64,000 nucleotides of DNA from Chlorokybus atmophyticus (Eukaryota > Plantae > Mesostigma and Chlorokybus algae). The DNA lies in contig RHPI01001855.1 in NCBI GenBank assembly GCA_009103225.1, forward strand, positions 1 to 64,000, in the 5' to 3' direction. This document shows positions 10,407 through 34,052 of the stretch, one piece after another. The position numbers and the translations under genes are program-made. Numbering within the stretch: the first letter of the stretch is position 1; each line of letters starts with the position of its first letter. The notes below the pieces were generated by a model, which did not search any database, was not told the origin of the DNA, and worked only from the letters and a program-made list of their open reading frames with translations.

Positions 10407-13400
10407 TCACAGGAGCACTTGCACCATGATGCCGTTGATGTGCGCTTTATCCACATACGCCTTGAAGTAAATTGTCAGCTTGCCATCTCTAACCGTCGTA
10501 GGAAACTGTCGCTTGACTGCAATATCCTTCCCGTGTGCAACTGCAAAACGTTCAACAATAGGTCAACATGTGTATGTGTGGCTGCAAGAAGTGACAACCT
10601 TCTCCATATGCTGCTGACTGTGCAGATGACTGTGCAGACTTGTGTAATGGCTCACCGGCGAATGTGTCGAATCTGGAGAGGACCTTCCTGCCCTCTATCG
10701 ACACATCAAACGAGCGCTTGCCCGCGGATGTCCAGTACGTCTCCGCAAAATACAATGTCACAAAGTAACCTCCATTCCTCACTGGAAAGTTGTAAGAGAA
10801 GCCTTGCTATAATATAAGAAAAGCACAGAGTAAGTCACACCACAAAGGACTTTCAGAGATGATTGGCATGGAACAACAAGCCCAACAACAACACAATTTC
10901 TACTCCTCCCACTGACCTCTCCAAAGCGTTCTGTAAACAACAGTTGCGTCCGTCCGCGGTCTACGTTCTTCATGGGACCATTGATGCCAACATACTCGTT
11001 GCTCTCGGTGAGTCCCGTGTAGTACTTGCGGGTCGCCTCGGAAGCCCATGTGTAACCCACAGCGTCTTTGAAACCGCCGCCGGTCTCCTTACCGCAGTTG
11101 ATAGCGTATCTCACCGCACCTCCTGATGCGGGTGGTGGCCCTGCCGACATAAAACAACTACTTTGGCATCTCACCCAACATGTGTCACACACACACACAA
11201 CGCTGTGTCCTCGAACAACAACAACATGACATGTTGTCCTCAAAAGTTACTTGCGTCAAGTTGCTTGTCACTTACCGGGAGTTGCCCTGTAGAAGGCTTT
11301 GTAAGCAGCGTTCCTGGTGCCTATCTTGATGGAATGGCCGAGCCCGCCATTGTCGGACCACTTGGTGAACTTGTTGTTGCCAGAAGTGCCGGGAGCAATC
11401 AGCGACAATGTGCCACCAACCACAGCCTGCACAAGACACTGTCAGTTTAAACCTTAAGGCTCCATGCTGTGTGGGTGTGTGCGTGTGTGCGCACGCGCGT
11501 GCCCGGGTATGTATGCTCACCTTTGCGACATAGGGTGTGCGCTTGGTGAGCGATCCCAATGTAATGCTGATGCCCCGCGGGCTGGAGTCAACGGTGATGT
11601 CCACGACGTTGGGATAGATGTTGACGGACTTGGAGTTGGTGATGCCATTCTTCGAGACCGTCAGCGTAATGATGATGTACGTATCCATCTCGTGCTGGGG
11701 AGCAATGAACCTGCCAGACGCGCCGCCAACACCCTGCATGTAATAAGAGTGAGCCATACGCCAACACACGCATGCACAAGAACAAAGATACGCACTCACA
11801 CGCTCGCACACGCGCTCACCAAGCAGTAGCGCGCACGTGTGTATGAGTATGCGTGCGTGTGCGTGCGTATGCACGCACACGCACGCATACTCATACACTC
11901 GCACACGCACGCATACTCATACACACGTGCGCGCTACTGCTTGGTGAGCTTACCCGAATGATGTCGTGCGAGTGGCAGGAGTTGAGTCCAACAGGGCAAT
12001 GCCGCACATAAGCGTCCCATCTCATCGTCGACCCTGCGACGGTGCTCCTGCCAGCGTAGTGCACCGCCATGCCGACATTCCACTTGAGCGTCGCCGTGGG
12101 TGAAGTGATCACTGCCTTGGGGACATCCTCTGGTCTACCCACAACTCTAATTGTGACTGAAGCAGAGGACGTCCCACCATTGCCAGAAACTCGGACACTC
12201 ACTCTGTGCGTGCCTTGCCTGTAGCCAATCACAAGAGATGTCAACTCTCAACAAGCAGTGAGCACAACTTCTTTGAAACACACACACAATGCTTACCCGA
12301 GTGTTGTGGATGCGGTTCTGGCTGCGCTGTCTCCAAACCTCCCATCCCCGTTGATATCCCAACTATACCCCAACCCTCCCCCCGCCGCTCCCGGTCTCGA
12401 CCCACCCGCATCACAGCTCACCCTCAATGGTGCGTTGCCCGACGTGGGCGTGCACGTGAGGGCGGCGGTGGGTGTGTCAGACACGAAGCGCAGGCGGAAG
12501 ATGTAGTTGCGCTCGTAGTCGACGATGTAGAGGTCACCGTTGGGACCGGACTCGATGGAGGCGACGCGGGTCTGTGCAGTGATGTCTCAATCATGTGTGC
12601 CAATGTGGAGGTGTGGGGGAAAGTGGTAATGTACCTGGTCGACGATGGTCACGATCTTTTTGGGGTCAGGTTGGCCTGTCGTAAGCAGCATGGCCCATAT
12701 GCCTTGTTGGGCAAAATCACCTGCACAGTTGCACATATTTGTTACAACCTGAACTCGGCAACAGCTCATCACACAACAGAAGGCACCATTCACAATACCC
12801 TTGCAACTACTTACCAAAGAACAATGCTCCGTGATATTGCGTTGGGTATGAGTTGCCAGTGTAGAATGCTACACCGGAAATTGAACCCGAGGACGGGGTT
12901 GTAATGCCGTTTGCGTTGGGAGCATGGCCGTGCCAGTATGAGTAGAAAGGTGGCACGTACGAGGTTGGGTTTCTATAATACGACGAACACGCATCGAACT
13001 GGGTCCAAGCAGGCTGCTGCGGCGGACCCTCAAAACACGGCCACCCAAAGTTGCGCATCTGCAATATGTTGCAACAACATAACAACTTTGTTCAGAGGAT
13101 GATGTCACATGCTACTCCTGATTGTGATGTACAGCTAAAGGCATGGAGCGTACTGTACTATAATTAACGACTTCATACCTTGCGATCACGGATGTCCCTG
13201 ATGACATTGAGTTCCTCCCACGCATCCTGTCCCACATCCCCAATCCACAACTCATTCGTGCGCGGCCGCAGCACCGAGCGATAGGGATTGCGCAAACCGC
13301 ACGCGAGGAGTCGGCTCCGACCACTGCCAGGGCTGGCAGAGCTGTAGAGTGGGTTCTCGGGCATGCCGTTGCCGGTGTCGGGGTTGATGCGCAGCACGCA

Positions 13401-14556
13401 ACCGTTGTACGACGGGTTCGAACCACCTGAGATGAGGTAAAGGTGAGCCCACATACACAACTAGTTGGTGATGTGAGTGCTAGTTACAAACCAACACTCA
13501 CGGAAGCGGTATGATTGGGATCTGAGGGCGCCTCCCTGTGAAGTGGGCACAACCAAGTTCTGGCTTGGGGGGTCTTTGCACACGTTGGTGAAGCCGGGTG
13601 GGCCCACCATGCCATAATCAACCGTCCACCACGCAGACCCATCACCTGTTTGTGTAAACACAACTACTGAGAACGAGTCTGATGAGGTCACATAGAGTGG
13701 CTTGTATGAGAGGTGCATGCGCTCACCGTTTGGTACGAGGAGCGCTCCATACTGGTCGAATTGGATTGCGCCCGCTGAGTGAGAGCCCCACTCGAAACAC
13801 ATCTGCCCACCTGAGAGGATGACCTGCTCGCCCGAAGCGAGAGAGTACCTCTTGCCCACATTTATGCGCCATCGGGACAGGCGGCCGTACGCCACGCAGG
13901 AGCCTTGTGGAGGACACTGGCTTAGGTGGGTCCTAGCTGGGGAGGAGCAAAAGGACATCCCATGTCAGCCACATCGAAGACAACATGCGCACAGAACAAG
14001 CAAGGCATGTGTGCTTGTATATGTATGGCAACAGGGAAACGGGATTACTTGGATCGTAGGTGTACAGTATGTAGAGGTATGGCCTCCCGTGCAAGAACTT
14101 GGGGTCTAAAGCCATCCCGAGCAGCCCGCGATCGTTCACGACGGAGACCTGCGGTTGGAAGTCCAGCAGCGTGTAGGGAGTAGACGCCCACGAGTCCAAC
14201 ACAAGCACTGTGCCCTGCAACAGATAACATTCCACATCAACAACGGTGACCACGCAAGCATGGTAGAACCCTAGGCAATGCACACAACAAAGCAACACTG
14301 CAGAATGCTTGCAGGAACTTCTACCTACACAAACTATACAGCACACGTAACAGTACATCACACTCGCCTGTTTCTGTCCGACAATGATCTTGCCGTCTCC
14401 GACAAACTTGACATTGGTTGGGCCGGGGATGTACGGCGAGATTTGGTCCAGCCGGAACCCAGCAACTCGCGTGTACGGTTGAGCGCGCGCCACAGAAAGG
14501 AGTAGAAGCAGCTGCAGCAGACAGGCTGCCGCAGCCGCATGCGCAGGCAACCCCAT
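10407..14556 (-). CDS. Secreted GSDH-PKD-malectin protein, paralog 2 (14 exons, 899 aa)
   Basis: Exons 14556-14368, 14214-14049, 13936-13727, 13645-13502, 13426-13179, 13058-12815, 12720-12635, 12571-12297, 12218-11954, 11733-11521, 11426-11276, 11140-10917, 10806-10656, 10540-10407 join in frame (2700 nt). Exon lengths mostly equal those of paralog 1. Intron 1 has a GC donor, and the malectin exon has one extra intron. Ends INGIMVQVLL-TGA. Confidence 0.9.
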
Positions 14557-15808
14557 GGAAGAAAACTCTGCTCACAAAGTGTTGGATACATTCAATACAA
14601 GCGCATGCAACAGCAATCGCGGAACTGAAATTCTATGATGAGTAGCATTTGAGTACACCATGATCAATTGCTAACTGACTGCTGTTCATGGAGGTTCAGC
14701 ATGCTGGCAGTGATGATGAACATCATCACTGCCAGCATGCTGCTAGCCAGAACAACTGCATCCAAGTAATGTGTGTGTGTGTATGCATGTCTGCTTGCCT
14801 ACGGGGTTATGTGAGGGACGATGGTGTGGAGGCTTCAAAGCGGCCTCTTCAAGCCATGTGCAGCGCCGCCATATGTGCACCTCTTTTGTAGCAAACGATC
14901 TGGGCAAATGTACTCACCTGCAAAAGACCTTTACATCACGTCACAATAAGCAATCATCATTGCATGCGAGCCAGCGCTACTGCCAGTGCCTCTGTGCAGT
15001 GCACTGGCATTAAATTAGAAATGCTGCTGGGAACAACGCTGTTGACAAGATAGCGTCGGCGAGAAACAGTGACTTTAACCTCATTCAACGATGGGCATCC
15101 GCAGGGTTGCGGGCATTGAACAGTTGCATGCATGACAGGGCTCCCCAATACATGTTGCCTGTAAGCAACGAACATGCAAGAGCAGCAGCGACGACTGGAG
15201 ACAGCGGACACCCATAACAACACCATTGACAGCGGATTTGTTGTTGCCGCACTGCGACTGCGATGACGAGCACAACGACACCAGCATGCATGAAGATAAC
15301 TGAGACACTCAAAGCACTGGCCTAGCCTGGAGTGCACCTGAGGCCCGGCACAACCGCAGTGATCTGATTACTCCAGTCCCACAAGAAGTCAGCCAAGCAG
15401 AGCTGTAATCAACGTACAAAGACACAATGCTGTGCACCCTCGGCGCCGCCACCGCAGCTGCCGCCGAAGCTCATAAAGGCTGTTAAGACCTCCAGCCAGC
15501 GGACAGCCGCCCGCGGACTGGGGCAAAAAGCAAGAAATGAAAAAGTAAACTGGCCTGGTCTCTCATCATCGTCTGACAGCTGCGTGCCTGCCACGTGGAA
15601 ACCTCAAGTGCGGCGGCGCTTCGGGCGACGCGGATTCCGTCGGCGCTAGTCTAGGCCTGATCTTCTATAGACCAATGACACCAACGGCACGTGCTGCAAG
15701 TCGGTACCCAGTGACTACTGGTCACTAACCAGTACCAGTAGGCTACTGGTACTGATTGGTAACACCGTGCCACTGTCATAATGAATCATTGTGCATGGCG
15801 CAGCTTGT

Positions 15809-15830
15809 CAGTCGGAGAGCCCGAGCAGCT
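15809..15830 (+). repeat. Left TIR of the Academ-like element
   Basis: Exact reverse complement of 25888-25909. Confidence 0.95.
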
Positions 15831-17020
15831 GTTGTGTGGTAAGCATTACATCACAAATGTCTGTGGTTTAGCGCGTGTGTCGATGGCGACCGACGACGAC
15901 CAGTCTGGTTGTGTCGATGTCGGCGGAGGCTGATCTGCCGTCTCCCGTCGAGGTCGACAAGTGTAGACGAATTTTGCAAAGACTATTCGTGTCGACGTCG
16001 GCATGTATGTTTTGGGTTCAGCCCATGTTAGGGTTTCCTTTACCTTCCCGCCAGTATTTTCCCGCCGGCGCCATTTCTGCTCCTGCAAGTTGTCATCCTC
16101 AGGGGCTGGGCGGTTGCTGGCGGGTTGCTGGCGGGGCGCGGGGCGCGGGGTTGCTGGGGCGGCGAAGGCGGAGGAACAGGAGGTGGAGGAGGGCGGGGCG
16201 GGGTTGGTTGCTTGCGCTGCGTGTGCAGCACCGCGCAGGAGGCTGAGCGCAGCCGTCTTGGTAACGCGCTGTGAGGCCTGAGAGCGTGCGTGTGCTCACC
16301 GCAGTTGCAACGGCGTGCCCCAAGCCGTCTTCCCGTCATCAGTAAGACCTGTCTAGAGATGGGGTTAAGAAAGCTGAAAGGCGGCGGGAAGGTGGTTGAG
16401 CTGTATTGGAGTGTCGGCGGTGTGGGCGTTGTTGTTGTTTAGGGGCGGGGTGAGTGTTCTTGCGCCCTGCGCGCAGGCTCAGTGGTGAGGGTGATTGCCG
16501 CCGCCTTTGGGCCGCCTGTGGGTTTCTCTGACTTCTGTACCCGGCAGCTCATCAGGCTTCTGGCGTGGATTGTGTGCCAACAGCGCTCATTTTTAAGGTG
16601 AGGATGTCGCTGTCTGTGCGCTGCTGTTCTATTTTTTTGGGGTGAACGAGGCAATCTGTTGTTGATGATGTGGTCTCGTGGCTGCTTGTTGTGCTGATTA
16701 TGCACACACGGGTGTCATGCTGTGCATGGTGTCATGGATGTCACGTTCCGAATCACTTGCATGTGACTGTGTGCACGGGTCTTTGCGTGTTGGTGCACTG
16801 TATTGTGCAGGCACAGGTGTTAACTCGCCGCTTGTTGTGCAAGGACTGCTGTGTTGCTGTATATCCTGAATAGGCTAACTGGTTTTGTATAAGTCGTTGC
16901 TGTTCTGCAACAGGTGTAATTGGCATTTTGTTGTTGTCCATTGGGTATTGCGCACACGTTTGCACGCATCCTTGCAACACAACCTGAGCATGTGCATCGT
17001 ATAGTTGACATGTGCGTTGT

Positions 17021-17749
17021 TCACTTCCATGACAATGGTTCACTACTGACTGTGTATCCTAAGCATTGTAGCATTTTGCGTCTTAGGTATTCTGAATAAG
17101 CTGGGGGTATGCATTCTACAAGCGTACTCTCAGCTTGTATCCAGTTTATTCCTAGAGCCTTTCTCCACCCTGTTGTTTTCCCCCGTGATCCAGCCTGCCC
17201 ATACACTGGGTACATCTGTGTTGCTTGTGCACTCTGTGGCTGACTGGCTGTTTGTGTCCGGTGCCCAGATAAGGTCCCAAGCCTCTTCTGTCTGTGGTCA
17301 CACACTGCGTCTGCTACGAGCATAGGAGAGGTCTCGAACAGTCTGTGGTGAAAGGTGGGGAGTCCAAACATTGTCCCGCAAAGCGTCAGATTGCTCTCCA
17401 TGTGACCTGCAGCTCCAGGTGTGTTTTCTAGGATGTAAGGCTTTCCGGCTCTGTGCAAGCGCATGCGCAGCTCGTGAAGTAGGGTGCTGTGGTTCCACTT
17501 ACTGCCGTGTTCACGCCTTTGTGATTCTGGAATGCATCTTGTAAATGCCTGACAGGGTGGGCTTGCCCAAATGACTGCGTACTCGGATAGGTCAACATGG
17601 AGCGCGTCTCCGAGGATGAAGTTGAACGGGTATTCTGGCTGAGGCAGAATATCTACACCGGTCACGTCAAAGCCAGCATGGTACAGTCCCATGCTGGCGC
17701 CTCCTCCCTCACAGCACAGGTCCAGCAGTTTGGGTCTGTGTGGAGCCAT
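17021..17749 (-). CDS. Compact prokaryote/phage-type C5 DNA cytosine methyltransferase (242 aa from MAPHRPK, intronless; possibly partly decayed)
   Basis: Motif I LLDLCCEGGGASMG, GVDI, catalytic motif IV WASPPCQ, motif VI YILENTPG, motif VIII region LCGTMFGL..HHRLFE, motif X ECIPPAYSEY. The layout matches small actinophage/bacterial DNA methylases. Motif I F>C and the R>H in RxR may be damaging. Confidence 0.88.
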   Translation of the reverse strand: MAPHRPKLLDLCCEGGGASMGLYHAGFDVTGVDILPQPEYPFNFILGDALHVDLSEYAVIWASPPCQAFTRCIPESQRREHGSKWNHSTLLHELRMRLHRAGKPYILENTPGAAGHMESNLTLCGTMFGLPTFHHRLFETSPMLVADAVCDHRQKRLGTLSGHRTQTASQPQSAQATQMYPVYGQAGSRGKTTGWRKALGINWIQAESTLVECIPPAYSEYLRRKMLQCLGYTVSSEPLSWK

Positions 17750-18808
17750 CGTGTCTCTTGGGTGTGTGCGTGAGGAGCAGAGGCGTTGATGCACTCCACA
17801 ATGGGATGAAGGGCAGCGGTGGAGCTGCCTTTTTACAGGTAGGTACTCTATTACCACCGACTTGCATGCATAAATCGGTGCCTTTGTGGCTGAAGCGCAC
17901 AACGATGTTGTGCTTCTCGATGTTCAGGTGTTGCACATCACCGTCGTCGAAGCGCACACTGTGTCTGCCTGCAATGGCTTAAGTGAGTTGTCGAGCTGCC
18001 ATGCTGGCGCGTGCAAGCTAACTCAGTGCTCACCTTGGGTCTGGTTGTATCTGTAGATGTGGCCTGGGTACCACTGCTGGTCCTCCGTCCAGAATACCAT
18101 GACGGAGCAGTCCAATAACCTGTCACCAGCGGCGTGGTAGCGCTGCCGATAGGATTCTATGTTGTCTTCTTCTGCCTGCATGATATCAACACTGAGACAG
18201 TGTTGCTCCCTGCAGGTGCATTTCACATGCACCCATTCTGGTCCTGAGCGACACTGACCTGGTTGTGGATGCTATACAAGGTTGTATCCTCATCCAGTAT
18301 GTGAGCCCGCTTGTTGCCACGTCCACATCGTGGTAGCGTTGGCTGCATGACACGTGGTGTTCAGTACCATGAGCTTGTATGGTCCGCTGCAGGAGTTACA
18401 AGAGAGCTTGACACTTACTGGTGCTGCTGCGATGATGTCTGGGGGCGCTGGTATTCCTGGTCGCACGTAAGGCATGTATTTGAGAGCTCGCCCATGCCAT
18501 TCAAAGGCTGCGTCGTTGCATTGTGTGCATGTGCATTTGTAGTTGGAAAATTCAGGTGTCTTGCATTGCAGCTTGCCTCTGCATCGGATGATGTGATCCC
18601 CTGCTGCGTAATGGTGCCAGCAAGCGGCTGTGAAATCAAACATATGCTTGTACTGACTGCATTCGCGCTCGTGGCAGGTGAGCCGCGAGCGCTGACCGTT
18701 GGTGACTACCTAAGCAAGGCATACACTGCAGGTGAGAACTGGGCGTGCAGGCTGTGTTGATTGGTTCTGTGGTGGAGGTCTGGACATGGCGCTTGTGTGC
18801 CGCTGCAT
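17709..18808 (-). pseudogene. Spliced Cys/His-rich + Tudor/Agenet-like chromatin-reader gene inside the Academ element (one in-frame TAG at 18710-18712)
   Basis: Exons 18808-18419, 18342-18259, 18175-18034 and 17968 onward join in frame through 76, 83 and 65 nt GT-AG introns. This gives LLDCSVMVFWTEDQQWYPGHIYRYNQTQG|RHSVRFDDGDVQHLNI, the VxWxxDxxWYxGxI...HxVxFDDGD Tudor pattern. The N-terminus has CxxC/CxxxxC clusters. Confidence 0.72.
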
Positions 18809-18987
18809 GCTTCCGCCTCTTGCAGCCGCCTCTGTCCCTGTGAGCGCTGCCAACTGTCGATCACGCCCGCCAAGTCGTCATCAGGTTCGGACTGTGAACC
18901 CTAAATTTGCGAGCAAAACCCTAAAAGTGAGAGCACCCAGGGCGTTGATGTTGCAACTGTCTGAGTAGGTATCGTGCTGCATTGCCA

Positions 18988-21900
18988 CTACAGCTGTATG
19001 TCTGCTTCGTCCACAGCTTCAAGCCAGGCATGCAATTGAAAGTCGTGCTCTGGATCAGAGCTCTCGCTGTCGGCGTCGTCTTGGTCAGGCTCAGGGTTAT
19101 CTGCTCTGTTAGCGTTTATGTCCAAGTGACTGTCGTCCTCATCACTGTCGTCTGCATCAGACTCGTCTGAAGTATGCGTGTCTTGCTGTGTCTCTGGCTG
19201 TGCTGCTTGTGAAGTTGGTAGATTCATGCAGGCAGTGCATCCGCAGCTTGGACCGCATGCGCTGCCGTTCTTGCGGCACTTGCAGCGCCGTGACTGACAT
19301 TGATCCTTCTTGCACTTGCAGCCGTGCATCAACAGTTGCGCACGTGCTCTTGTGTCACGTATGTTGTCTTCGGTGTCCATCTGCGCCTTGTACAGGCCTT
19401 CAACCAGGGTGTAACCATACTCGTCCAATGGGGGTTGGTTGACATTGGCCTCGCACATCTGGGACCACATGCGTACCACCCACATGACGCGCTTGGCATG
19501 CAGCAACAGTGCGGATGCTGGTGGCATTTCGTCCTTGTACTCCGCAGCCTTTTCCCAAATGCTCTGTTTAACTTCATGCAGCCATTTCTGGAGGCTGCTG
19601 TGGTCGTCCTTGGGTGCGGGTCCTCCATTCACCTCGATGAACACACTCTCTCCACTGTTGTGCGCAGGGAAGACATTTTTGTGCTTGCTGTAGTACGCAC
19701 AGCCGATGAGCCGCAGCAGCATGGTGGTGGCAGAATGCTCGTTCAGAACCTCCACCTTCGTGATGAAGTCGCACTCCCTGGTAAGCACATCAGCCCAAAA
19801 AAACTGTTTGCTGATGCCGGCAAAGTAGCTAGTAAAGTCACAGCCTGTGCCTGCAAAAAACAGCATAATAAATAGTGCCCTCTGTTGCGCAGGAATGAAG
19901 CGCAGCTGCGGGAATTGTCCAAGGTGTTGATACAGGCGGGTTAGGTCAACAAATGGAGGTCGGCTGCTGTGGTTGAGACTGGTGGCAAGCTGTATGTACA
20001 CCTGCTTGCTGTGGGTACCCCATTGCTCAAGTGCTGCAAGTCCAATTATGGACACATCGGTGTCCGGAGAGTAAATGAGGACCTGGCGGTGCGAACATCG
20101 CTGTGCGTGCAGCCACATGCGAGAATCACTTTCGGCGTGGTTGCACTGAAACAGGTCAGTAACTGAAAGAGAGACTTCACCGTCATGGTTGGTAACCACC
20201 CTCGCCTTGTCACGCCACTGTGGTGCATCGCTGCCCCCTGCAATAACGAATGTCTGGCCTGGTCTCAGGTGCTGGGCGACCATTGGTGGCAAGAACTCTG
20301 TCATCAACGAACACAAGCTGCGCTTCAGGCTACGGTCGGCCAGCAGATCACGCCATGAGCGCGGGACCTCAGAGTTGAGGGTGAGAGCCTGTCCACTGCG
20401 TGTTGCTGCACCATCTCTGCATTGTTGTAGGCTGGATTTAACTCCCGTGGCATGTGCAGGGTCATCAAAGATGACATGCATCTCCTTGACCGAGGGATTG
20501 TAGAGCCGAGGCAGAATGCAGCTGCGCAGTGTTTGCACCAGATAATCCTGCATGTTCTCAACGCCGCTACTCGGGCCTTTGCTGATCATGAACATTCCCT
20601 CGGCTATCACCGTCTCCACGCCCAAAGGGTGCCGAAGCAACTGGACACCCTCACAGGAGGCACACAGGTCAGTAAGAAATTTGGCTTTGTCTCCCTTGCG
20701 CATGCTGCCATCCTCTGCAAACATAGCTAGTGGAATCTCTTGATACTGAGCCATGCATGTTTCCTGAGTGGCATTGCTTTTGCAGAGCTTCTTCAGGATG
20801 AGGGTCTTGGTCTTTGTCATGCGTGCAAGCACCTGGGTTGACCTCTGCACCTGTTTCTTTACTTGCATTGTCTTCAGACCAAACCTCCGGCCCACATTGG
20901 TAGCTGTCATCTCCTTGCAGTGCGTAACCTTGGCATATAACAGGAACTGGTCGGGGCCAATGTCGTAGTGACGCGCCAAGTCTTGAGCAACTGCTGGGTT
21001 GGCTTCTCTGGCTGTGATCAAGTGCACGAGCTGCTCTCCATGCGTCGTGCCGAGGATGTCTGCATTAGTCCGGATGCTCACCATTGCTCTGACATTGCAG
21101 CCCGTCCTGTCGCTGGCCACCACCAAAGGCGGTGTCACTTGCGCTTCGGGATCTTTGCTTAGTGGACTCAGCAAGGCCAGCACTCTCTTGACAACAAGCG
21201 CACGATACGGCAGGTATAGTGCCTTGCGCATCATGTAGTCTGCTGTTGGCCGACATAGAGTAGACTTCAGGTCCTTATTAATGAGAGTCTCGTGTGCTTC
21301 ATCACCAGCAATACTGCAACACTGTTTGCCTGTAATACTAATAGTGAAGGCCCTGGCATGCAGGTGCTCCAGCACGTCTTCCGGCCATGATAGGATGTCA
21401 GCCAAGTGCTGCGTAATGAGGCGTTGATAATGCGGACGATCCCACGCAAACGCCAACGGTCCCAGCGCCTTGTACGAGGCAACGCGCAGCCTCCAGTTGC
21501 TGCTGCGGATGGCAAAATAGAGGCCCAGGTATGCAGCTGCATCACGGGTGGTGTAGTGCCACCACAAGGCCCATGTCGCGTCAGTGTGCGCGCGTCGTCG
21601 CCCATAGTCCATGAACTCCATATAGTGGCGCTCGTCCAGCACCGGCATATCTTCGAGGCTTGGCACGAGTACTCTCGCCCAAATGTCCGGGCAATCCTTA
21701 TGGAAGCACATCAACTGATAGCGGTAAATGGCTTCCCAAGTCTGCACCAGGTACGCATGCATTCTCTTCCAGTTGCTGCCTTCAGCAATCATGTTGCGTG
21801 CTGTCGATGCTGGTATCCCTGCTGCAATTGCCATGGCGTCTAACCCCGCATCCCAATACACCTTGAAGATGACAGGCAGCAGGTTGTACAAGGCATGCCA

Positions 21901-24900
21901 GTCCCCGGGAATTGGCAACACCGAATCCCAGTATCCAGGTTCGGTGTTTTTCAAATGTATCATCAAGCTGAATGTCTTTTGGTCTCCAACCACAACAATC
22001 TTGTGCTGACTTGCATCAACCCCAAGCCTTTGTCTCAGCTCGAGCAGGGCCAGCTTCAAATTATCTGGCTTATCTGGATTGTAAGGTAGTAATGGCATGT
22101 ATAGGACTCTGCTGGGCGGCCTCTCATCAGTTGGGCACAAGTTGGCCACCACATTCTTCAGGGAGTTGATGTCATAGCATGGGATCTCTGCGCGCTTGAT
22201 GACAGTGTTGTGCAACACCTTCTTGAAGTGATCACTCGCTGCCCGCTGATGCTCTTGCAACTCAATGATGGTTTCTGATGCTGGTGGGTACACATACTGG
22301 CGCTGTCCTGGAGGTGGTAGTTGCAATGTTGATGGGTCCGGCGTCTCCATGCGGGCTTCACGACACGTGCGCGCTCTGACTGCAGGTACTGGCTCTTCCG
22401 CAATACTTGTTGTGGCAATGGGAGCTGGTACCACAACTTGTGTAGTTGTACAATGCAGATCTTTGTCAACACCACCGTTAAATCTGATCTGCCCACAGGA
22501 CCTGAAGTCCCAGTTGTCGAGGCTTGCAATGATAAACTCACTTGTGCCTGCTTACAGGGGACAGGGCGCAGCTTGCATGGCCTTGCAACGGGACATAATG
22601 GCACGTTCTAGTGTGCTGATGCTCGTGCATACGCCAACTCTGTTTAGCAGCCACATGAGCTGGCTGGATGTGCTCATTGCGTCTACGCAGTCCGCGATTG
22701 CAAGATGCATGCGGGAATAAGCATGCGAGTTGCGGGTGTATACAGCACTGCTGAGCAGGTACGCACAGCGCAAAAGCTTTGCGCGCTCCCATGCCTTAGG
22801 TTCCTCGACTTGCTTGATCTTGACGCTGCACAATGCCTTGAACAGACGCTGCAGATCGGGGTGACTCTTGTCGAGCTCCTTGGTCTCGTCCAGGAAGCGC
22901 ACGTCAGCACAAGTGCTCTTGTTCTGAAGACATCGTCTTGCCGCCTCCTGCTTCATCAGCCCCGTAAGGTAAGCCAACGTTTTGTCGCTGAGCTCGCCTT
23001 CGTCATGTGCTGACTGGTCCACACTGTTGGGTACCGACCCCAACATGCACACTGCAGGATCCACCCACGACGGCAAGATCAGCGTCCCATGACGTCGATG
23101 CCCAGTGATCACCACAACCGCCTCTCCTAGCACGCGCTTGATTGTGCGCAGCAAGTTGTGCTGGTGCGTGAACTTAAACATTCTGGCCAGCTCGGTCAAA
23201 CGTACTGGTATGCTGTTCCGCAGCAAATACCAAGCGACATACTTCACAGGCTCGTTCGGCTGATCCACACACTGTCCAGTAATTGCACGCATGGTCTCCT
23301 GGTGCTGTGCGAGCCGCTCCAACTGCTGGCGCCAGCTGGGCAATGATGTGTCGACGCCTTGCCCAAGAGCATCAACCACCTCTTGCAACTGCGTCACCTT
23401 TGCCTGCAGGGCATCGGCGTTATCCTGTGCCAACGCTGCCATGTGCTCCGCCTCCGCCAACCGCAGGACGGTGGCGTCGTGCACATTCACACGGTCATTC
23501 AAGTCCGCTTGCACACACTGCAACAACGGCAGTGTGTGAGGCAAATGTCACATGCGCAATGCAATGCCCTATATCATTCACCGCCAAAGTGTGACCCGCC
23601 TCTAACTGCGACTGCAGATCTTCATTGCAGCTGGATAGATCAAGCAACTGGCCTTGGCAGGCTCTCCAACGTCGTTCCCATTCGCTGCGCACACCCGCAT
23701 GCAGGTCTTGCGCGTTACACCATCTCATGTGCTCAGCTTCCAGCTGCCGCATCACACTGTGCGCTTGTGCCTGGGCTGTACGCAACTGTCCTTGCAACTG
23801 ACACACCTCCTCCTGCAGGCTACTCCGTTGTTGGTGTGAAGATTGCGTAGCAGTCTCCACATGGTCATCATCCAAACATTGGCGCTGCGCCATCCGAGAC
23901 ATCTCTGCTGCCATTACTTGCTGGCGGTCGCTGGCATTCTGCAGCTTATCATGAAGCTCTTCCGCTTGGAGCCGGAGTACCTGCAACTCCGCACGCGACT
24001 TCTTATCGTTCACCTCCAGGTCACGCCTTTGCTGAGCAGAGGTCTCTAGCAGAGTTGCCAGCTGTGATTGCAAACCATCCTTGGCAGACAATGCAGCCTG
24101 ATAGTCGGAGGTTAGGCTTTGCACCATGTCTAACAGCTTTTGCCTGTCCGCTTCCCATGCAGCCATAACATCCTGAGAACATTGCGCTCTATCAACCCCA
24201 TGCAGCTTACTATTTCATATCATGCGGTGGCATACACTGCTCAACAACAATGTTACACCACACGCGCATCAATCAACACAGACTGCTCACCAACATCAAC
24301 CCCACACACCTGCATTGTATATAGGCCCTCGTCACCATGCTCAGTGCTGAAAGGCACAGCACCCCCGCTTTGCTCTTCTGCGCAGCGCATGGATGCATCA
24401 GTACCACGAAGCTTGCCCAAACAATCAGCTGCAAACAGTCTCTCACACACACTGTCAAGAACATACACTCCTTACGCAGGCACACTCTCACACTGAGATG
24501 TCAAGTAGCACAGCAGATGATGCAACAGCCGCATTGAGTGCAAACCATACGGTCATTGAAGGTATTACAATAACCTATGCATCTCGCCTAAGGAATATAA
24601 CTAACGGGGCGAACAAAAGGAGCGTTCGGACCTGCACTGGGCCAGAGTCCGGCATCCTTTGCTGCCTGCTGATTATTGCTGCCTCCGTTCCAGGCAGCTG
24701 GTCTACCTCCAAGCCCACCATTCTGGCTAGAGGGGTACTCAGGGGAGAGCATGCTTGGCTGCTGCTGGGAGTCATGGAAAGGGCGACCAGACAAGTGCCT
24801 ATTATTGTGTTCAGAAGGCGTGACGCATGAGCGCATCAGGAGTTGCTGCCCAGCATTAGGATCAACATTCTCAATGTCCTGGCCACGCAAGGCCTGCACG

Positions 24901-25538
24901 AGAAACGAGGATGAGTTCATGTGCACGCATGCATCGCATATGCTGTGCGACAGCAACATCGATATTACTCACCAGGCCTGTTGGCCGGCCACTGAATGCA
25001 TTATTTTCCACCCGAGCTCCTGGTGGCAAGAATGAAGGATGCATACCCTGCACGTACACCTCTATGTAAGTTGATCGATTACACTCAAGCCAAACACAGT
25101 TTGCACATGCCCGGCAGCAAGCGGAGGATGTTCACTCACCGGTAACATCACCAAGTGTCGCCGGTCAGTGGCAACGCGCCAACAACGTCCAGAGGTCAGC
25201 GCTTGCACATAAACTTCTCTGTCAGGTACACCAGAGATAGTGAGATCAGTGCGCAGACCCATAATAATAGCGGCCTGTTTACTACGTGTATTCCGGGCAC
25301 TGTCAGACTTCTGAACCCTGCGCTTCTTCTTTGCCTTCTCCGATGGTGTCGGAGAAGACCCCGTCTGTACAGCACCCCCAACTGGCACGACAGCCTGAGA
25401 CTGCACAACAGGCGTACCCGCCCCATTCTCCCCCACACCTGTCGCCTGACCACTACACCCATGAAGCAAAGGGCTTCCAAACCTCTCCGACCCCTCATGA
25501 CCATCGTACCCCTCGTCCTCCAGGGCATGATCACTCAT
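18988..25538 (-). pseudogene. Academ transposase: spliced low-complexity/coiled-coil N-terminus + DDE-type core + XPG/PIN-like nuclease + C-terminal CXC (Cys8); one in-frame TAA at 22552-22554
   Basis: ORFs 22552-23544 and 18988-22434 are in one frame, separated by a single TAA. The read-through reveals SLDNWDF; other core motifs are VVGDQKTF, PGDWHALY and AGDEAHE. Nuclease motifs are VIFDD, HAESD, SPDTDV and GTGCDFTS; the Cys cluster is GCKCKKDQCQSRRCKCRKNGSACGPSCGCTAC. Upstream exons are inferred from splice signals and are less certain. Confidence 0.8.
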
Positions 25539-25887
25539 CTTCGCCGCCGTCGCGGCGCACGCCCCACCGCCCCTCCGCCCCACCACACAGACCACACCGA
25601 CTGCAATGCACGCCCCTCACAATGCTCACCATTTGAATTTTCGCCAACTGCACCATCCCGCCCAACCAGTGCAAACGGTTCCAACATGGCACGTCCGTCG
25701 TCGTCGACGGTCACGGACCGGTCAGCTCTTCACTATGTCGATCGGGCCTGCGTCGCCGTCGACCGTCAGCGACCGAACACGCGAGACAACATCGACACAA
25801 GAAGTCCAATCACCCACAATCGACATCGACACAGCCAGAAACCACACGTCAAAAGGCGTGAAAACAGAGACCAAATGATGTAAAGAA

Positions 25888-25909
25888 AGCTGCTCGGGCT
25901 CTCCGACTG
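25888..25909 (-). repeat. Right TIR of the Academ-like element
   Basis: Exact reverse complement of 15809-15830. Confidence 0.95.
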
Positions 25910-25910
25910 T

Positions 25911-26734
25911 TGTAGGAAGTGAGGGGCCGTCCACAGAAACCCTGTGGACCCACCCTCTATGGTATGGTAGTAAGGATAAGAGCTAAGAGAATAGAGGGTA
26001 AGAATCCCTCAAACACTTACCTAAATAATAAGCGTTTATGAAGTTCAAAGGATCAAAGGATCAAAGGACGCCGGTCGCGACCGGCAAAGTTCGGTCGAGG
26101 ACCGACAAACGCGCGGAACTCGCGCGCATTACCGAATTCAGCCTTCTGATAGGCTGGGCGGTGTAAACAAGAATGGAGCCGCTGGATCAAAGTCCACAAG
26201 ATCTGGACCGTCCAACCCACATCCCCACGATCATAAGCAGCTCAAATTTATGCATTAAAATATGCAAAATGAGCACAACAACATGCACAGTGTCACTCAC
26301 ACGCGCATGGAAATATACAAGCGAAACACTTGTCACAAAGCACTTGTATTAGCAGGGGTGCAACTTTAGCAACTGCTCGAAGCACGAAATGGAAATGAGA
26401 CTGCATTTTATACTATGCCTATCACTGATCTTGAAAGGCTACATAGCTGTCCAATGCATGAAAGAAATAAAGTTAACTAGGAAACGTGCCTCTAAATGTA
26501 AATGCAATTTTCAAATGCATGAAGGAGCAAATAAGGAAAAAGGTCCATATTCTTCCCCGTTAACTGGTGTGCTACGGGGTAAGACCCTACGCCTAGCCCT
26601 AGGGGCTAAGTCTCTAACGCTTCCAGTGGGGCGCGGCTTGATATAGAGGCTTTGAGGGGCCTACATAGGCAATAGGCCAGATATCTACAGTGTGGGGCCA
26701 TTAACTTGGTTAGTCCACTAGTTAGGCACTCACA
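25911..26734 (-). repeat. 3' LTR of Gypsy element A
   Basis: Colinear similarity to 34053-34912, with several substitutions and indels. Confidence 0.88.
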
Positions 26735-26899
26735 GTGTAGGGAAGTCCTCCCCTCTTAAACCAAGCTCACCTGAGCGGATAAAAGTGTACGGTCAAAAGT
26801 GACCACGAGGCGTCAAAGCAAGCTCCAAACCACGAGGGTTGGTAGCCGGACGCCACTTCAGAACCCAGTCTTTTTGGTCGCCAACTAACTGCTCGTTAG

Positions 26900-28481
26900 C
26901 TACTTGGTGTGCCGGTATCCCTGGTATAATGACAAGATAATTTGACTGAAACAATACTCTAACTGCGGACATGCCTCTTTGAAACCGAGTAGTTCTCGAC
27001 GGAGGTCCGGCTTGAGGTCCCGAGCCATGAACAGCCCGAGTTGGGTTAGGGATTGCTCTCGGGTTCGATGGTTCCGGTTCGCGGCGTGGAAACCGGTACT
27101 GGATCGTCTCTCACGTGACGCCTGCTGCGAAGCAGTGGTGCGTCTGCAAGCCGCTCACACACGTCATCAACAAGAGCCGCTGCCTGGTTGTCAGTGGCAG
27201 TGGTGGTGACGGCGGCAGTCGGCTTGGCAGGCTGCTGCGTCGCCGGCTTGTCAGGCCTGTCAGTGGCGTGGCCTTTGGCGCGCCGAGCTGACTGTCGGCA
27301 GCGCCGACGGCACTGCCGTGACGTCGTCAGCAGTGAAGACTATCATGGTAGTCATGGGCGGTGGCGGCGGTGATGAGGGAGCCGCGGCTGCCTGCCAACA
27401 CATCGTCGCATGTGAATACGCATCTATAGGCATCACACATGTATGTAATAAAGCCACTAGCAACGCGAATAGCATCGCCTGGCTCAGATAAACATGCCAT
27501 GTGCAATAACTTGCATTGTGAATTTCCATAACACTAGTCCAAATGGTCTGAAATTTGGCACACCCACACTAAACAATATGTGTGACATAACTACCAAGTT
27601 TGAGCCAAAACGAACAAGCATGCAATGCACACAAATGTGTCCAATTTGTGCATGTTAACAGGACTTGCAGAAAAATGCAGAAAAACGGTGCATGTGCACC
27701 TACAAAACACACTCAAACACTCAACCACACACCCTAGAAGGGGTGGCTTCATGTTGAGAGTCTAGAGGGGAGTTCACGGTGATGATATTCACCATTTCCT
27801 CTTCCTCTTTAGCCGATTCGGGTGTCGGCGACGAGGGCGCCGAGTCGGTGAGGCCATAGTCTACCTCGTCCTCGGAGAGCTCTTTAGCCTTCCCTTTGGC
27901 CTTGGATGCCGTGTCTTTGTCCGTGGTGTTGTTCACCACCTTGACATGAACACATGTGCATAAGTGTCTTCCTATAAGGTGACGATCGTGAAAGAACACA
28001 CGTGGACGTAAGCGTGCGAACACGAATAGGGGCTCGCGCTTGCGCTTGCGCGTGCATTTGCTACGTTTGCCCCTTGGTGCTCATCTATCACAAGGTCGTA
28101 CCTCCATAAGAGCGCGAGTGGTGTCATCGCACTCGGGGTCGGAATCATCAAAGTGGCGACGGCGCTTACGTCGAGGCGGGGTGGAGGTAGGGCTCGCCGC
28201 TACCTTCTTCCCTTTATCGCCTCCTTTGTACACGAAGGGTGGCGGGTGAGGCACCTTCGGGTTTCTCAGGCTCGTCGGCGCGGTCAGGAACCATGCCGCC
28301 GGGGTGAAACTTGGCCGCATGCTTTCCGCCACTTGTTCACATGCTTCACGCGGGAAACCATGTTGGCTTCGCCGCGCACGCGATGCCCGGATGGGTAATG
28401 GCGTGGTATCTTGTCCCACAAGTTGTCGGGAAGGTCACTTGGGTACTCACGCACGTCCAAGAAAAAGCGTGCACGAGGCAT
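26900..28481 (-). pseudogene. Possible spliced accessory ORF between integrase and the 3' LTR of element A
   Basis: Sense-strand open segments (28481-28284, 28419-28081, 28023-27721, 27529-27260) bounded by plausible splice signals (tag|GTCACAATG, GAG|gtacga, caag|GTGGTG, AGG|gtgtgt, gcag|GCAGCC). Low complexity; no recognised domain. Confidence 0.35.
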
Positions 28482-29118
28482 TGTGACCTATGCATACACA
28501 CGCGCGTGTTAGAATAAATGTGCACAATGTGCCTATGGCCCCAAATGCATGAAATGCTTCATGCTCACATTATCAAACTTGAATGCAACACTTGGCATGC
28601 ATTATGGATGAGCCATGGCAGATACACACTAAATCTCGGAGCTTACCTCGGCTCCAACAAGTAGAGCAACTACGTCAAAGTTACCGCACAGTCATTTCCC
28701 TGACGGTGAGCACGCTGGCGCCTATCTATATGCCAGAGGCGTAACTCTCAAAATATCTTTGACTGTGTGCGGTCACAGTTAGATACATAGCCAATTCGGC
28801 CATAAAATTGTTTCCAACCTAGTTAAGGGCACGTTGGTCAGCGGTTTGCGGCCGCGTTGACCCATGTTGTTGACTGACAGCGCGTCAGTCGGCCGCGGGC
28901 GGCGTGGCGCGTTCTGATTGGCCGGCCGCCGATCACATGGCTATAAAATTGCCACGCTAGCAGTTTAATTGTTGGTTTGTGATGACCAGCAATTGAAAAA
29001 CTCACAACATGACCCGATTTGGGCCAAAGTTGAGCGCGTTACTTCAACCCGGCTGCTCCACGCCTAAGTTGAGGGCCCATAAGGACCACAATACCCCTTC
29101 TGAGGTAAATAAATTAAA

Positions 29119-32100: not shown

Positions 32101-33860
32101 CAACCGTTGTTGTTCATCAGATGTCAATGTGTTTGACACTTTGAATTGTGTGTGTGCAATATCACAAGACTTATGTGCGCGTTGTTCGCGCGAAGTTGCA
32201 GCCACCGAACAAGTTAATGCAGGCTCGTACATGAAGTGTAAGTCTACTTCAACACTCCTGCCATGTGGCTTACATGCAAATGGCATTTGTTGGGTCGAAT
32301 AATCCAACTTCGCACCGGCTTTATGTAGCCAGTTTGTACCAATCAACAGATTGTAGTCCAATAATGGACTTATTTCTATGTCCACTGCTCGTGTCACATT
32401 GCCAATTGTGATGTTATGCTGTGGTAACGTGCCGGGGAAGGAACATTCCTGTCCGTTGGCTACGCGCATAGTGCGCGTTGTGGCTTGCATTGTTTTGTCA
32501 AGCCCCAAGCTTGGGAGCAGTCGCAATGCCCATTACGGTGCATGCTGCACCAAAGTCTACGACAGCTTCCAACTCATGGCCACTGACGTGAACCATTGCT
32601 ATATATAATATATATATTTTTGTAGCGCACAGCCATGGTGGCAATGAGGCTGGGAAACTCTATGGTTTTGATACCATCAGTTTCATTGGCCAACCCATGC
32701 AAGTAATTAAGCAATTGTTGCCAATACTCAGGGCTAACCTTGAGCAATTGCTTGATTGAGATTTTAGCTGTCATGTTGTCCAATTGTTCGATCACATTAT
32801 GCTTACCACCTTTAGGTACTTGTACATTTGGTAAATCTGTAACGTCAACTTGTGACACACTTGCTCTCACCTCAGCTTTGGGAGGTATAAAGACCTTCCC
32901 ACTTGAGGTAGAACTTGTGATTGCAAAGGCATTGTCCTCAGTGACCAAGTCTTGCAAACTTACTGTCTGCACTTGCCGCTGTGAGGAACTGTTGTGCACT
33001 TGCTTACGCAAATCATCCCTCTCTTTAATGAAGCATCCTCCTGCAATGTGACCCGGGTTGTCACAATATGTGCAGTGCAGGTTGCTTCTGTTAAAGTTTT
33101 TCTTAGCACCATTGTAGCTTGACTCAGGTTTGTCACCGCTTTTGTACTCGGAGTACTTGGTTTGCTTCACCATTTGGGTGTGAGAGTTCACTATTTGCTT
33201 AAGCTTTTGAGTAAGATTATCAACCTTTTTCTCAAGTGCATTGTACGCCGGGGTCACGTGCTTTTACGGCATTAACCTTGTCTTTGTCTTTAGCCTTTGT
33301 TTGCTGTTGAACCGAGGCCACGGACTCAAAGTATATTAAAGGTTTCGGGTATGCGTGCAGTCACCTTTTCAGCTCATTTCATGTAGGTGAGGGAGAAGTC
33401 CTTGAATAAAGCGTACCTTGCGCCACGCTGCGGGGAAGGTTTTCCCACCGAGTTTGTATATGAGGACTTGTACGCCATCTGCGTATATTTGCACTGATTC
33501 ACCAACTTCTTGTTTTTGACTGTTTGGTTTCGTCGTCCACACATTGGGATCATCAGTGTCAAAGCGCACGCGTAATGCCTTCTCAAATTGTCCCCAAGTA
33601 CCACAATCAGAATGGTCGAACCATTCTTGTGCGCCATCGCGCAAGTATGTGGTCGCTAAATCAAACTTCTCATCCTCAGACCACTGATATAACCGCGCAG
33701 AACGGTTGAAGTGTGAAATCCACCGACCAACATCTTCGTGGGATTTCCCCGAGAAGGTCATTAATGTTGGCATTGGAAACTTCCTTTGTGCCAATTTAGG
33801 CACGATAGGTGTTGCTTTCGGGGCAGGAATACCGGTAGTAGCAATTGCAACACCATGCAT
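29119..33860 (-). pseudogene. gag-pol: gag-pol polyprotein of Gypsy element A, frameshifted with stop codons
   Basis: Gag FSGKSHEDVGRW and knuckle CTYCDNPGHIAGGC; protease region LLIGTNWL; RT RFCIDYRKLN and YLDDILI; RNase H TDASDFALG, EKECLAIVW, TDHHSL; integrase HDNLGH...CTEC, TDLIGP, SDQGEEF, VERFNQTIK. Confidence 0.93.
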
Positions 33861-34052
33861 ACTGTCGGTACCCTCCTTAAGTTTTTGAGGGTTGGGATTG
33901 TCATTGATGGAATCCCGCTGTTGCTATTTGTACGCATTGTACTAATATGATAGGCTTAAAAGATTTATTACAATTGTAACCCCCCCCCCCCCCCACAAGA
34001 TTTTGAATGTTTTCACGCCCGATTGGCGTAGGCGAGACTTGCTCCAATACCA

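Follow-up and report, generated by a model that had tools for sequence, protein, structure and literature searches.

Boundaries and architecture of the element

The analysed window, a 64,000-nucleotide stretch of Chlorokybus atmophyticus DNA (contig RHPI01001855.1, positions 1 to 64,000), contains a 10,101-bp (10.1 kb) element at 15809-25909, whose surroundings in the eukaryotic genome include LTR and hAT elements. It carries a transposase gene and a C5-cytosine DNA methyltransferase gene. The perfect 22-bp terminal inverted repeats (TIRs) and 4-bp target site duplication (TSD) claimed in the initial annotation were both confirmed. The terminal features are:

15805-15808, no strand: left TSD, TTGT, identical to 25910-25913
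15809-15830, plus strand: left TIR, 22 bp, starting 5'-CAGTCGGA, exact 22/22 match to the right TIR
15876-15885 and 15910-15919 (span 15876-15919), plus strand: two exact copies of subterminal TGTGTCGATG, left end
25790-25833, minus strand: two exact copies of subterminal TGTGTCGATG, right end, mirroring the left
25888-25909, minus strand: right TIR, 22 bp, exact 22/22 match to the left TIR
25910-25913, no strand: right TSD, TTGT, identical to 15805-15808

The TIR 22-mer occurred at only two sites in the window, even with three mismatches allowed (expected 0, 100 shuffles), and both TTGT copies directly abut the element ends, a 4-bp match with a chance probability of about 1/256 at fixed positions. 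The TGTGTCGATG motif is present as two exact copies per end, 34 bp apart and inverted in orientation between the ends, and its four exact copies in the window all lie within 110 bp of an element end; we infer that these are candidate transposase-binding sites. The identification of a TIR/TSD-bounded cut-and-paste DNA transposon is supported. An empty (pre-insertion) site would be expected to read ...GCAGCTTGT directly followed by AGGAAG...

All genes of the element are on the minus strand, and neither a second transposase nor an extra TIR was found inside it. The small ORFs within the element had no Pfam matches, so no restriction-endonuclease partner was recognised. A search for poly(A) signals found no informative ones, tRNA and Rfam matches were absent across the window, and a bacterial promoter/terminator scan was set aside as uninformative for a eukaryote.

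The transposase gene

The initial annotation described a transposase of the XPG type co-oriented with the methyltransferase. The shared strand and a FEN/XPG/XRN-like nuclease were borne out, but the large ORF proved to be part of a longer, interrupted gene whose frame runs upstream through a TAA at 22552-22554. All features below are on the minus strand:

~24166 to 18988: whole transposase gene, from joined ORFs including a candidate 64-nt intron
23582-24166: candidate exon 1, coiled-coil-like, ATG at 24166, from the in-phase join via the candidate intron
23518-23581: candidate 64-nt GT..AG intron, which would join ORF 23495-24166 to ORF 22552-23544 in phase
18988-23517: exon 2, a single reading frame with one in-frame TAA, from the ORFs and homologue alignment
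22552-23544: upstream transposase ORF, same frame, joined through the TAA
22552-22554: premature in-frame stop TAA, across which homologues P0125 and P0130 align straight
22507-22518: DNWD motif, within exon 2
18988-22434: large transposase ORF from the ORF list, part of exon 2
21259-22275: DUF6589 match (Pfam)
19345-20517: FEN/XPG/XRN-like nuclease, from the fold model and profile
19222-19326: CXC domain, Tesmin-like, within exon 2

Between the TAA and the first of the conserved DNxD motifs, which lies downstream of it, the distance is 11 codons. Because the stop precedes this catalytic-type motif, the present copy is predicted to be no longer able to make full-length transposase, and would be mobilised only in trans. 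Candidate exon 1 had no detectable homologues. A 33-nt intron around the TAA was considered and rejected, since homologues align across the conserved strand that precedes DNxD and that such an intron would remove.

The N-terminal region matched Pfam DUF6589 at 1.2e-10, a CXC domain was also matched, and the conserved transposase motifs DNxD, GD, GDWH and DEAHE were seen. When compared with the PDB, the N-terminal region (a mostly helical model, pLDDT 73) gave no match by profile or by Foldseek. The AlphaFold model of the C-terminal domain (pLDDT 89) matched XRN2/XRN1/Rat1 with E-values of 4e-5 to 1e-3, followed by FEN1/flap endonucleases at much poorer E-values (0.35 and above); a profile of this domain gave a weak match to the H3TH motif of EXO1, SGCDY (E 0.26), and there was no direct Pfam XPG match to the transposase. 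XRN and XPG/FEN nucleases both have the PIN-like 5'-nuclease fold, and EXO1 is an XPG-family member. The model thus points to the annotated nuclease fold class, for which "XPG proper" would be an approximate name.

The methyltransferase and its relatives

Downstream of the transposase stop by 1.24 kb, and on the same strand, is the second gene of the element:

17021-17749, minus strand: C5-cytosine DNA methyltransferase ORF, 242 aa, intact, with its own ATG and a TGA stop (PHROG_363)

Because the ORF lies inside the TIRs and TSD, within 15809-25909, the methyltransferase is cargo and moves with the element, as had been proposed. On either side of the methyltransferase region lies one member of a weak telomere-like AACCCTAAA inverted pair (16013-16036 and 18916-18939, 71% complementary); a search around the region for nested-element boundaries (TIRs, LTRs or TSDs) found none that were convincing.

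The SPPCQ, EN and IPPAY motifs named in the initial annotation are present at aa 63-67, 108-109 and 214-218, respectively. Motif VI reads ENT at 108-110 (V to T), with the PCQ of catalytic motif IV kept. Motif I reads LDLCCEGGGAS against DLFCGAGGAS in the family, with the family-invariant D, L, C, G and G kept and the F and first G replaced, and the conserved RHR carries R134H. Catalytic residues had been put forward as a check on the enzyme; it retains 49/52 family-conserved positions, among them those of PCQ, ENx, the RHR-type motif and IPPAY, and for this reason looks active. It could be that a donor lineage, and not the transposon, maintained this conservation.

The PHROG_363 profile matched the methyltransferase at 5.7e-24, and a PDB sequence search returned only marginal DNMT2 matches (E 0.5). 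The window enzyme itself had no Pfam match at E<0.1 and NCBIfam gave nothing useful, while most of its 3187 homologues carry PF00145 and the family occurs on at least 518 phage-sized viral contigs. These matches support its assignment to a small single-domain family abundant in phages and bacteria and not, as already argued, to the DNMT1/DNMT3/CMT type. The accompanying label "phage/bacterial-type" is apt for this phage-abundant family but not for the nearest relatives, which are four enzymes on giant-virus-like contigs, a group characterised by a methyl-CpG-binding domain (MBD).

These four MBD methyltransferases (P0001, P0002, P0003 and P0005, loci L002-L005), from runs SRR14454007, SRR14454025, SRR24908243 and SRR30923185, share 38-46% identity with the window enzyme. 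The grouping received an SH-aLRT of 98 in a quick tree of 121 rows, and a UFBoot of 82 (threshold 95) with an SH-aLRT of 96 in a careful tree, with a long terminal branch for the window enzyme (0.86-1.06 versus a median of 0.37-0.4). All share a C-terminal extension, an insertion after motif IV and a VYG..G.RG segment. In the window enzyme, motifs VIII and IX are joined by a short linker without an MBD. By contrast, P0001, P0003 and P0005 have a Pfam-detected MBD in the target-recognition region and P0002 has the same inserted segment without an MBD match; all four have PCF or PCL where the window enzyme keeps PCQ. The window enzyme therefore appears to be a sister lineage of the giant-virus MBD-methyltransferase clade, and not a member of it.

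The contigs carrying the MBD methyltransferases, together with their relatives, encode a D5 primase-helicase, topoisomerase II, KilA-N, a protein kinase and a PLOD-like enzyme, and appear to be giant-virus-like, an assignment made from short contigs. Resemblance to the viral contigs is limited to the methyltransferase coding sequence. IMG/VR scans for relatives of the MBD clade returned just phage-sized contigs with ordinary family members, and the viral D5 primase used as a query found no named relatives. Because the nearest relatives are MBD enzymes on giant-virus-like contigs, the sequence kinship suggests that the methyltransferase reached the element by a viral route. Separately, the viral enzymes whose target-recognition region incorporates an MBD appear to be an undescribed group of methyltransferases.

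Related elements and the origin of the cargo

An exhaustive search of representative proteins recovered 2776 transposase homologues at approximately 30% identity, none above 47%, including amphioxus, crinoid and annelid proteins; a word-indexed search gave one match. None of seven window ORFs was present in a collection of 15 billion proteins by exact look-up. Relatives at six loci (L001, L153, L164, L172, L179 and L203) are 5.9-6.9 kb long and have TIRs starting 5'-CAGTC, a start that these distant relatives have in common with the present element, as well as perfect 4-bp TSDs. Their 3' non-coding tail is approximately 0.6-1 kb, versus approximately 3.2 kb downstream of the transposase here. 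The initial annotation had proposed to look for the methyltransferase in other copies. It was absent from all 73 related loci compared (1.04 Mb), which are distant relatives at 22-39% amino acid identity and not of the same family, so its capture was probably lineage-specific or one-off; one copy of the methyltransferase-bearing element is known here.

AcademX elements are reportedly attributed to Kapitonov and Jurka 2010 and Kojima 2020. They are described as having 3-4 bp TSDs (PMC10045372, citing Kojima 2020) and a transposase with an XPG-family nuclease (PMC10045372); their distribution is mainly animal and their mean length in bivalves is approximately 5.6 kb (PMC10294476). By published description rather than by comparison with reference sequences, the present element fits AcademX in that it has TIRs, a 4-bp TSD, relatives in animals and a large protein in which transposase and XPG/FEN-type nuclease are united, and the nuclease fold, 5'-CAGTC termini and 4-bp TSDs agree with the Academ-type identity first given to it. 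It differs in its length, 10.1 kb against the bivalve mean and the 5.9-6.9 kb of its relatives, and in its extra methyltransferase gene, which is absent from the 73 related loci and from the literature searched.

We consider it probable that the locus holds a copy of an AcademX-type transposon with a horizontally acquired methyltransferase as cargo and a broken transposase. Under this explanation, a cut-and-paste element of 10,101 bp would have inserted recently, with a transposase protein in which a DUF6589-type N-terminus bearing conserved acidic motifs is followed by a FEN/XPG/XRN-like 5' nuclease and by a CXC domain resembling that of Tesmin, and with an enlarged 3' tail (approximately 3.2 kb) housing the separate same-strand methyltransferase gene. 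The methyltransferase would have been acquired horizontally, the likeliest route being from a phage or bacterium to a giant virus and thence to the transposon or host. As it has conserved catalytic motifs and a SAM-binding motif that keeps the family-invariant residues, the enzyme has most likely retained the ability to methylate C5 of cytosines within a short DNA motif, and this methylation would act in trans on element and host DNA. Possible gains for the element would be self-limiting silencing, blurred host methylation marks or protection of its DNA.

It is possible, though doubtful, that the methyltransferase is a dead-end passenger, picked up once and recently by a single copy or a very small family, without benefit and with its ORF open because the insertion is young. 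The absence of the gene from the 73 related loci, the stop codon that already inactivates the transposase of the present copy, and the fact that the evidence comes from a single copy without sister copies all accord with this, as does a GC3 of 0.51 for the methyltransferase against 0.56-0.69 for the transposase exons. However, despite 38-46% identity and a long branch the enzyme keeps 49/52 conserved positions, and such far divergence with so little loss therefore points to long purifying selection somewhere. Moreover, its GC content of 0.52 is like that of the host and element (0.53-0.54) and unlike that of the viral contigs (0.59-0.65), which disfavours a very recent transfer from those viruses.

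A more far-reaching version of our preferred explanation, which we regard as unlikely on present evidence, is that an Academ lineage recruited a giant-virus-derived methyltransferase as a selected working module that writes methylation on its own or host DNA (e.g. to tune silencing or for masking), with giant viruses as the vehicle that carries the gene, and perhaps the transposon as well, from one eukaryote to another. Cytosine methylation is the main weapon of the host against transposons, and a methylation writer aboard a transposon is for that reason counter-intuitive. Iyer et al. 2014 are said to have described TET/JBP genes on KDZ and other fungal DNA transposons. That fungal KDZ and other DNA transposons carry TET/JBP (PMC12730594) offers a parallel, as these too are DNA transposons with an enzyme that acts on cytosine methylation, but that enzyme is an oxidiser rather than a writer, and the transposon superfamily and host group are different.

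Carriage of a C5 cytosine methyltransferase by a DNA transposon, which bounds the novelty initially claimed, is already known from Mariner-1_OLpv of Organic Lake phycodnavirus (Bao and Jurka 2013, PMC3627910). This element likewise has the methyltransferase beside its transposase and a giant-virus connection, but it is a Tc1/mariner element in a viral genome and has an EcoRII-like endonuclease in addition, whereas the present element is probably Academ-type and resides in the genome of a cellular eukaryote, and no endonuclease partner was recognised in it. Retrotransposons bearing DNMTs with conserved catalytic residues are known in Symbiodinium and Klebsormidium (de Mendoza et al. 2018, PMC5890265); these are LINE, DIRS or LTR retroelements with eukaryotic-type DNMTs (DNMT3 or an orphan clade) in hundreds of copies, in contrast to a cut-and-paste DNA transposon with a small phage/giant-virus-type enzyme in one copy. 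No Academ-borne methyltransferase was found in the literature searched. The documented cases are retrotransposons of dinoflagellates and a charophyte, and one mariner element residing in a giant virus. Alongside these, a cellular genome that harbours an Academ-type DNA transposon with a methyltransferase of giant-virus kinship would present an unusual cargo carrier. Such an element would add a third, independent route for methyltransferase entry into eukaryotic genomes and link gene traffic among phages, giant viruses, transposons and hosts. The target motif of so compact an enzyme (242 aa) would be readable in a simple expression test.

We think it improbable that the element falls outside Academ, as a member of an undescribed DNA-transposon superfamily that merely shares a FEN-like nuclease. 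Such a reading could draw on an N-terminal region to which Pfam gives just DUF6589 and for which neither an RNase H/DDE fold nor a PDB relative came to light with the pLDDT 73 model, on top structural matches to XRN exonucleases rather than XPG/FEN1 proper, and on an AcademX assignment made from descriptions and not from an Academ reference sequence. Against this, XRN and XPG/FEN share one fold, the H3TH motif matches the XPG-family member EXO1, and to our knowledge the combination of a transposase-XPG fusion, 3-4 bp TSDs and a mainly animal spread is known only from AcademX. Finally, it is very improbable that the methyltransferase is not true cargo but lies in a nested second mobile element, or in host DNA bracketed by the TIRs of two copies (a composite or macro-transposon): the element is approximately 4 kb longer than its relatives and the AACCCTAAA pair brackets the region, but the element has a single pair of TIRs, its 4-bp TSD copies match, the subterminal motifs are arranged symmetrically and all genes share one strand, and the search inside it gave neither convincing TIRs, LTRs or TSDs around the methyltransferase nor a second transposase or extra TIR. 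A by-product of the analysis is a usable signature for this sparsely described superfamily, comprising 5'-CAGTC termini, a 4-bp TSD, and DUF6589 with a FEN/XRN-like nuclease and a CXC domain.

Termini and affiliation of the transposon

The Academ-type element spans 10,101 bp and has a GC content of 0.54, similar to that of its flanks. Its terminal inverted repeats (TIRs), target-site duplication (TSD) and minus-strand ORFs are all seen in the sequence as the initial annotation described them:

15805-15808 and 25910-25913, TTGT TSD, directly outside each end
15809-15830 and 25888-25909, perfect 22-bp TIRs, exact reverse complements
17021-17749, minus strand, C5-cytosine methyltransferase ORF
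18988-22434, minus strand, 1148-aa transposase ORF
22552-23544, minus strand, transposase ORF in frame with the 1148-aa ORF
23495-24166, minus strand, further upstream ORF

Every substantial ORF of the element lies on the minus strand, and the methyltransferase and transposase are co-oriented. No further copy of the TIR 22-mer was found in the 64-kb window with up to three mismatches allowed (0 in 100 shuffles). Each end also carries two exact copies of TGTGTCGATG, 34 bp apart and mirrored between the ends; these four are the only exact copies in the window and look like candidate subterminal transposase-binding repeats.

We compared the element with 73 related loci (1.04 Mb), comprising 72 from metagenome/WGS contigs and the locus of P0121, the closest full-length transposase homologue by word-indexed search, with element ends set by comparing near-identical copies. 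The related elements are 5.9-6.9 kb long, every TIR starts 5'-CAGTC, and one family starts CAGTCGGA, as does the window element. Perfect 4-bp TSDs were found in six of them (TGAG, TTAA, CTTA, GAAA, TAAA and TTAT). Loci with related DUF6589 and FEN-like elements, CAGTC TIRs and 4-bp TSDs were:

L001, 9165-15079
L153, L164, L172, L179 and L203

One WGS set (WLWD01) contained dozens of copies of related elements. The termini are conserved although the proteins of related elements are only 22-39% identical, and the combination of CAGTC termini, TIRs, a 4-bp TSD and a DUF6589/FEN-like protein provides a practical annotation signature for the group. AcademX elements, as summarised in PMC10045372 (citing Kojima 2020), have a nuclease among their products and leave TSDs of 3-4 bp. 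Judged against this published description, the conserved termini, 4-bp TSD and fused 5' nuclease make it probable that the element belongs to AcademX.

Transposase domains and a premature stop

The 1148-aa ORF has Pfam matches to DUF6589 (aa 54-392, E 1.2e-10) and to a Tesmin/TSO1-like CXC domain (aa 1037-1071). An exhaustive search returned 2776 relatives at approximately 30% identity, including uncharacterised proteins of Branchiostoma, the crinoid Antedon and the annelid Owenia that have the same DUF6589 and CXC pattern; full-length relatives are 1250-2250 aa long. Identity to transposase homologues never exceeded 47%, and the window's proteins were absent from the large protein collections searched.

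The transposase had been called XPG-type. Pfam gave no direct XPG match in the 1148-aa ORF, and the one match to a profile of its C-terminal 390 residues aligned with 28 homologues was confined to the H3TH motif (SGCDY..G.GK, E 0.26) of EXO1, a human member of the XPG family. A confident AlphaFold model of the C-terminal region (pLDDT 89) found its best PDB matches in the 5'-3' exonucleases XRN2, XRN1 and Rat1 (E 4e-5 to 1e-3), with flap endonucleases and FEN1 matching far more weakly (E of at least 0.35). Because XRN and XPG/FEN enzymes have a common PIN-like 5'-nuclease fold, the label is correct at the level of fold. Within an alignment of the N-terminal region the motifs GD, GDWH and DEAHE..N...K were invariant or near-invariant; the model of this region was weaker (pLDDT 73) and had no PDB matches, so a DDE/RNase H fold is only putative.

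A single TAA (22552-22554) is all that separates the ORF at 22552-23544 from the 1148-aa ORF. The last 140 residues of the former are homologous to the region preceding the DUF6589 match in many relatives, and the transposase homologues P0125 and P0130 align ungapped across the TAA and on into a strand and DNxD motif that are conserved (FTIISIDNID versus FIIASLDNWD). A 33-nt GT..AG intron around the TAA was rejected because it would remove this strand, across which the homologues align. A nonsense mutation is the simplest explanation and would leave this copy unable to make full-length transposase, barring sequencing error or readthrough. Further upstream, the coiled-coil-like ORF at 23495-24166 starts with ATG and plausibly joins the next ORF in phase via a candidate 64-nt intron, GTGAAT...TTGTTGCAG (23518-23581). 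With this intron the transposase gene would extend over approximately 24166-18988 and encode approximately 1,700 aa, in line with relatives.

An intact methyltransferase gene within the element

The methyltransferase ORF (METHYLTRANSFERASE, 242 aa) matched PHROG_363 'DNA methyltransferase' (5.7e-24). We found 3187 homologues of 200-250 aa, most with PF00145 and annotated as DNA (cytosine-5)-methyltransferase, and a family member is encoded on at least 518 phage-sized IMG/VR contigs. A DNMT2 match was marginal (E 0.5). The earlier assignment to the small phage/bacterial type holds at the level of the family. The claimed motifs are also present, namely motif IV SPPCQ, motif VI ENT and the C-terminal IPPAYSEY; the RHR-type motif is HHRLFE, and motif I is atypical, with CCEGGG where the family has FCGAGG. 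Among 52 alignment columns at least 90% conserved in 120 homologues, 49 are kept (deviations D58A, V110T and R134H). Three deviations are not exceptional for the family, whose members have a median of 1 and a 95th percentile of 5. Conserved columns and motifs together indicate that the gene is not decayed.

Downstream of the transposase stop, 1.24 kb precede the gene, and a further 1.19 kb separate it from the left TIR. Its surroundings show no TIRs, LTRs or TSDs that would hint at a nested element, and nothing beyond a weakly matching inverted pair of telomere-like AACCCTAAA motifs. One side of the pair consists of two tandem 20-nt units with this motif (18897-18935), approximately 50 bp past the transposase stop; the other, a weak inverted match close to the left end, is at 16013-16036. 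Between them they bracket the methyltransferase-bearing 3' region, and they may represent a promoter 'telo-box' or a remnant of the segment's acquisition. The 3' tail is 3.2 kb long versus approximately 0.6-1 kb in L001, the one relative compared. The supposed linkage of methyltransferase and transposon holds here, inside the TIRs, but not in the distant relatives compared (22-39% identity): none of the 73 related loci has a relative of the gene, which suggests an addition specific to the lineage, or even to a single copy.

The four best matches (P0001, P0002, P0003 and P0005; 38-46% identity) are encoded on Logan contigs L002-L005, from SRR14454007, SRR24908243 and SRR30923185. They have an additional segment in the target-recognition region, identified by Pfam as a methyl-CpG-binding domain (MBD) in all except P0002, and PCF or PCL in place of PCQ. 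Common to the window enzyme and these four are a C-terminal extension, an insertion after motif IV and a VYG..G.RG segment; unlike the MBD-methyltransferases, the window enzyme lacks the MBD and retains PCQ. It grouped with the MBD type in a quick tree of 121 rows (SH-aLRT 98) and in a careful tree of 46 rows (UFBoot 82/SH-aLRT 96), on a long branch.

Compact and without introns, the MBD-methyltransferase contigs have a GC content of 59-65%. On L002-L004 the methyltransferase gene adjoins a gene for a PLOD-like glycosyltransferase/2OG-oxygenase. On L003 it is followed by genes for an aquaporin and a D5-type primase-helicase, and contigs bearing related primases encode type II topoisomerase, KilA-N and Ser/Thr kinase. 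This gene set is giant-virus-like; a search with the D5 primase recovered no named relative. The MBD-bearing enzymes of these contigs look like an undescribed viral 'reader-writer' fusion. Similarity to the viral contigs is confined to coding sequence (17024-17737), with no resembling DNA flanking the gene. In GC (0.52) and GC3 (0.51) the gene agrees with the host and the element and not with the viral contigs, which makes a very recent transfer from these particular viruses unlikely.

Proposed working and genomic setting

The family transposase would cut at the CAGTC termini with its fused 5' nuclease assisting, and the element would take the methyltransferase gene along, the present copy needing transposase in trans; this part of the reading is fairly safe. 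More tentatively, the enzyme may be driven by its own promoter and methylate a short motif in trans, and the built-in MBD of the related viral enzymes hints at CpG-linked activity. Self-limitation is one benefit that the element could gain; dilution of the host methylation signal, the proposal made for DNMT retrotransposons (PMC5890265), or protection of DNA, an idea raised for viral mariner elements (PMC3627910), would be others. Retrotransposons are known to bear DNMTs (PMC5890265), a mariner element residing in Organic Lake phycodnavirus encodes a C5 methyltransferase (PMC3627910), and fungal DNA transposons carry TET/JBP genes (PMC12730594). None of the papers searched describes a methyltransferase in an Academ element, and the arrangement is known so far from a single, already defective copy.

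The neighbourhood of the element is a repeat-rich eukaryotic region and not a viral insertion:

25914-34913, minus strand, older Ty3/gypsy-type LTR retrotransposon
25914-26729 and 34052-34913, its LTRs, 86-93% alike
30714-31895, its RT/RNase H ORF
35298-36134, BED zinc finger and DUF659 ORF, a hAT-type transposase fragment
40794-41975, retrotransposon gag ORF

The outer edge of the Ty3/gypsy-type LTR (25914) follows directly on the right TSD, so the younger Academ element inserted no more than 4 bp from the end of the LTR. Next to the LTRs are a PBS-like TGGTATTGGAGC and a purine-rich tract. Beyond this retrotransposon lie the hAT-like and gag ORFs, the latter probably part of another LTR element together with a 79-nt direct repeat (38085-38163 and 41919-41997, 3.8 kb apart). 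On the left side of the Academ element, approximately 1.3 kb away, is a large inverted duplication (4607-8403 and 10653-14539) with arms of approximately 3.8 kb, 75-88% complementary, in which no Pfam-recognisable ORFs were found. At 46450-54881 a 4152-bp unit with internal CA/TG-rich short repeats is arranged head-to-tail in at least two copies (95-99% identity). The ORF at 57155-58795, which encodes the C-terminal half of a papain-family cysteine protease and long PPSPPPP-type proline-rich repeats, is probably a host gene exon.
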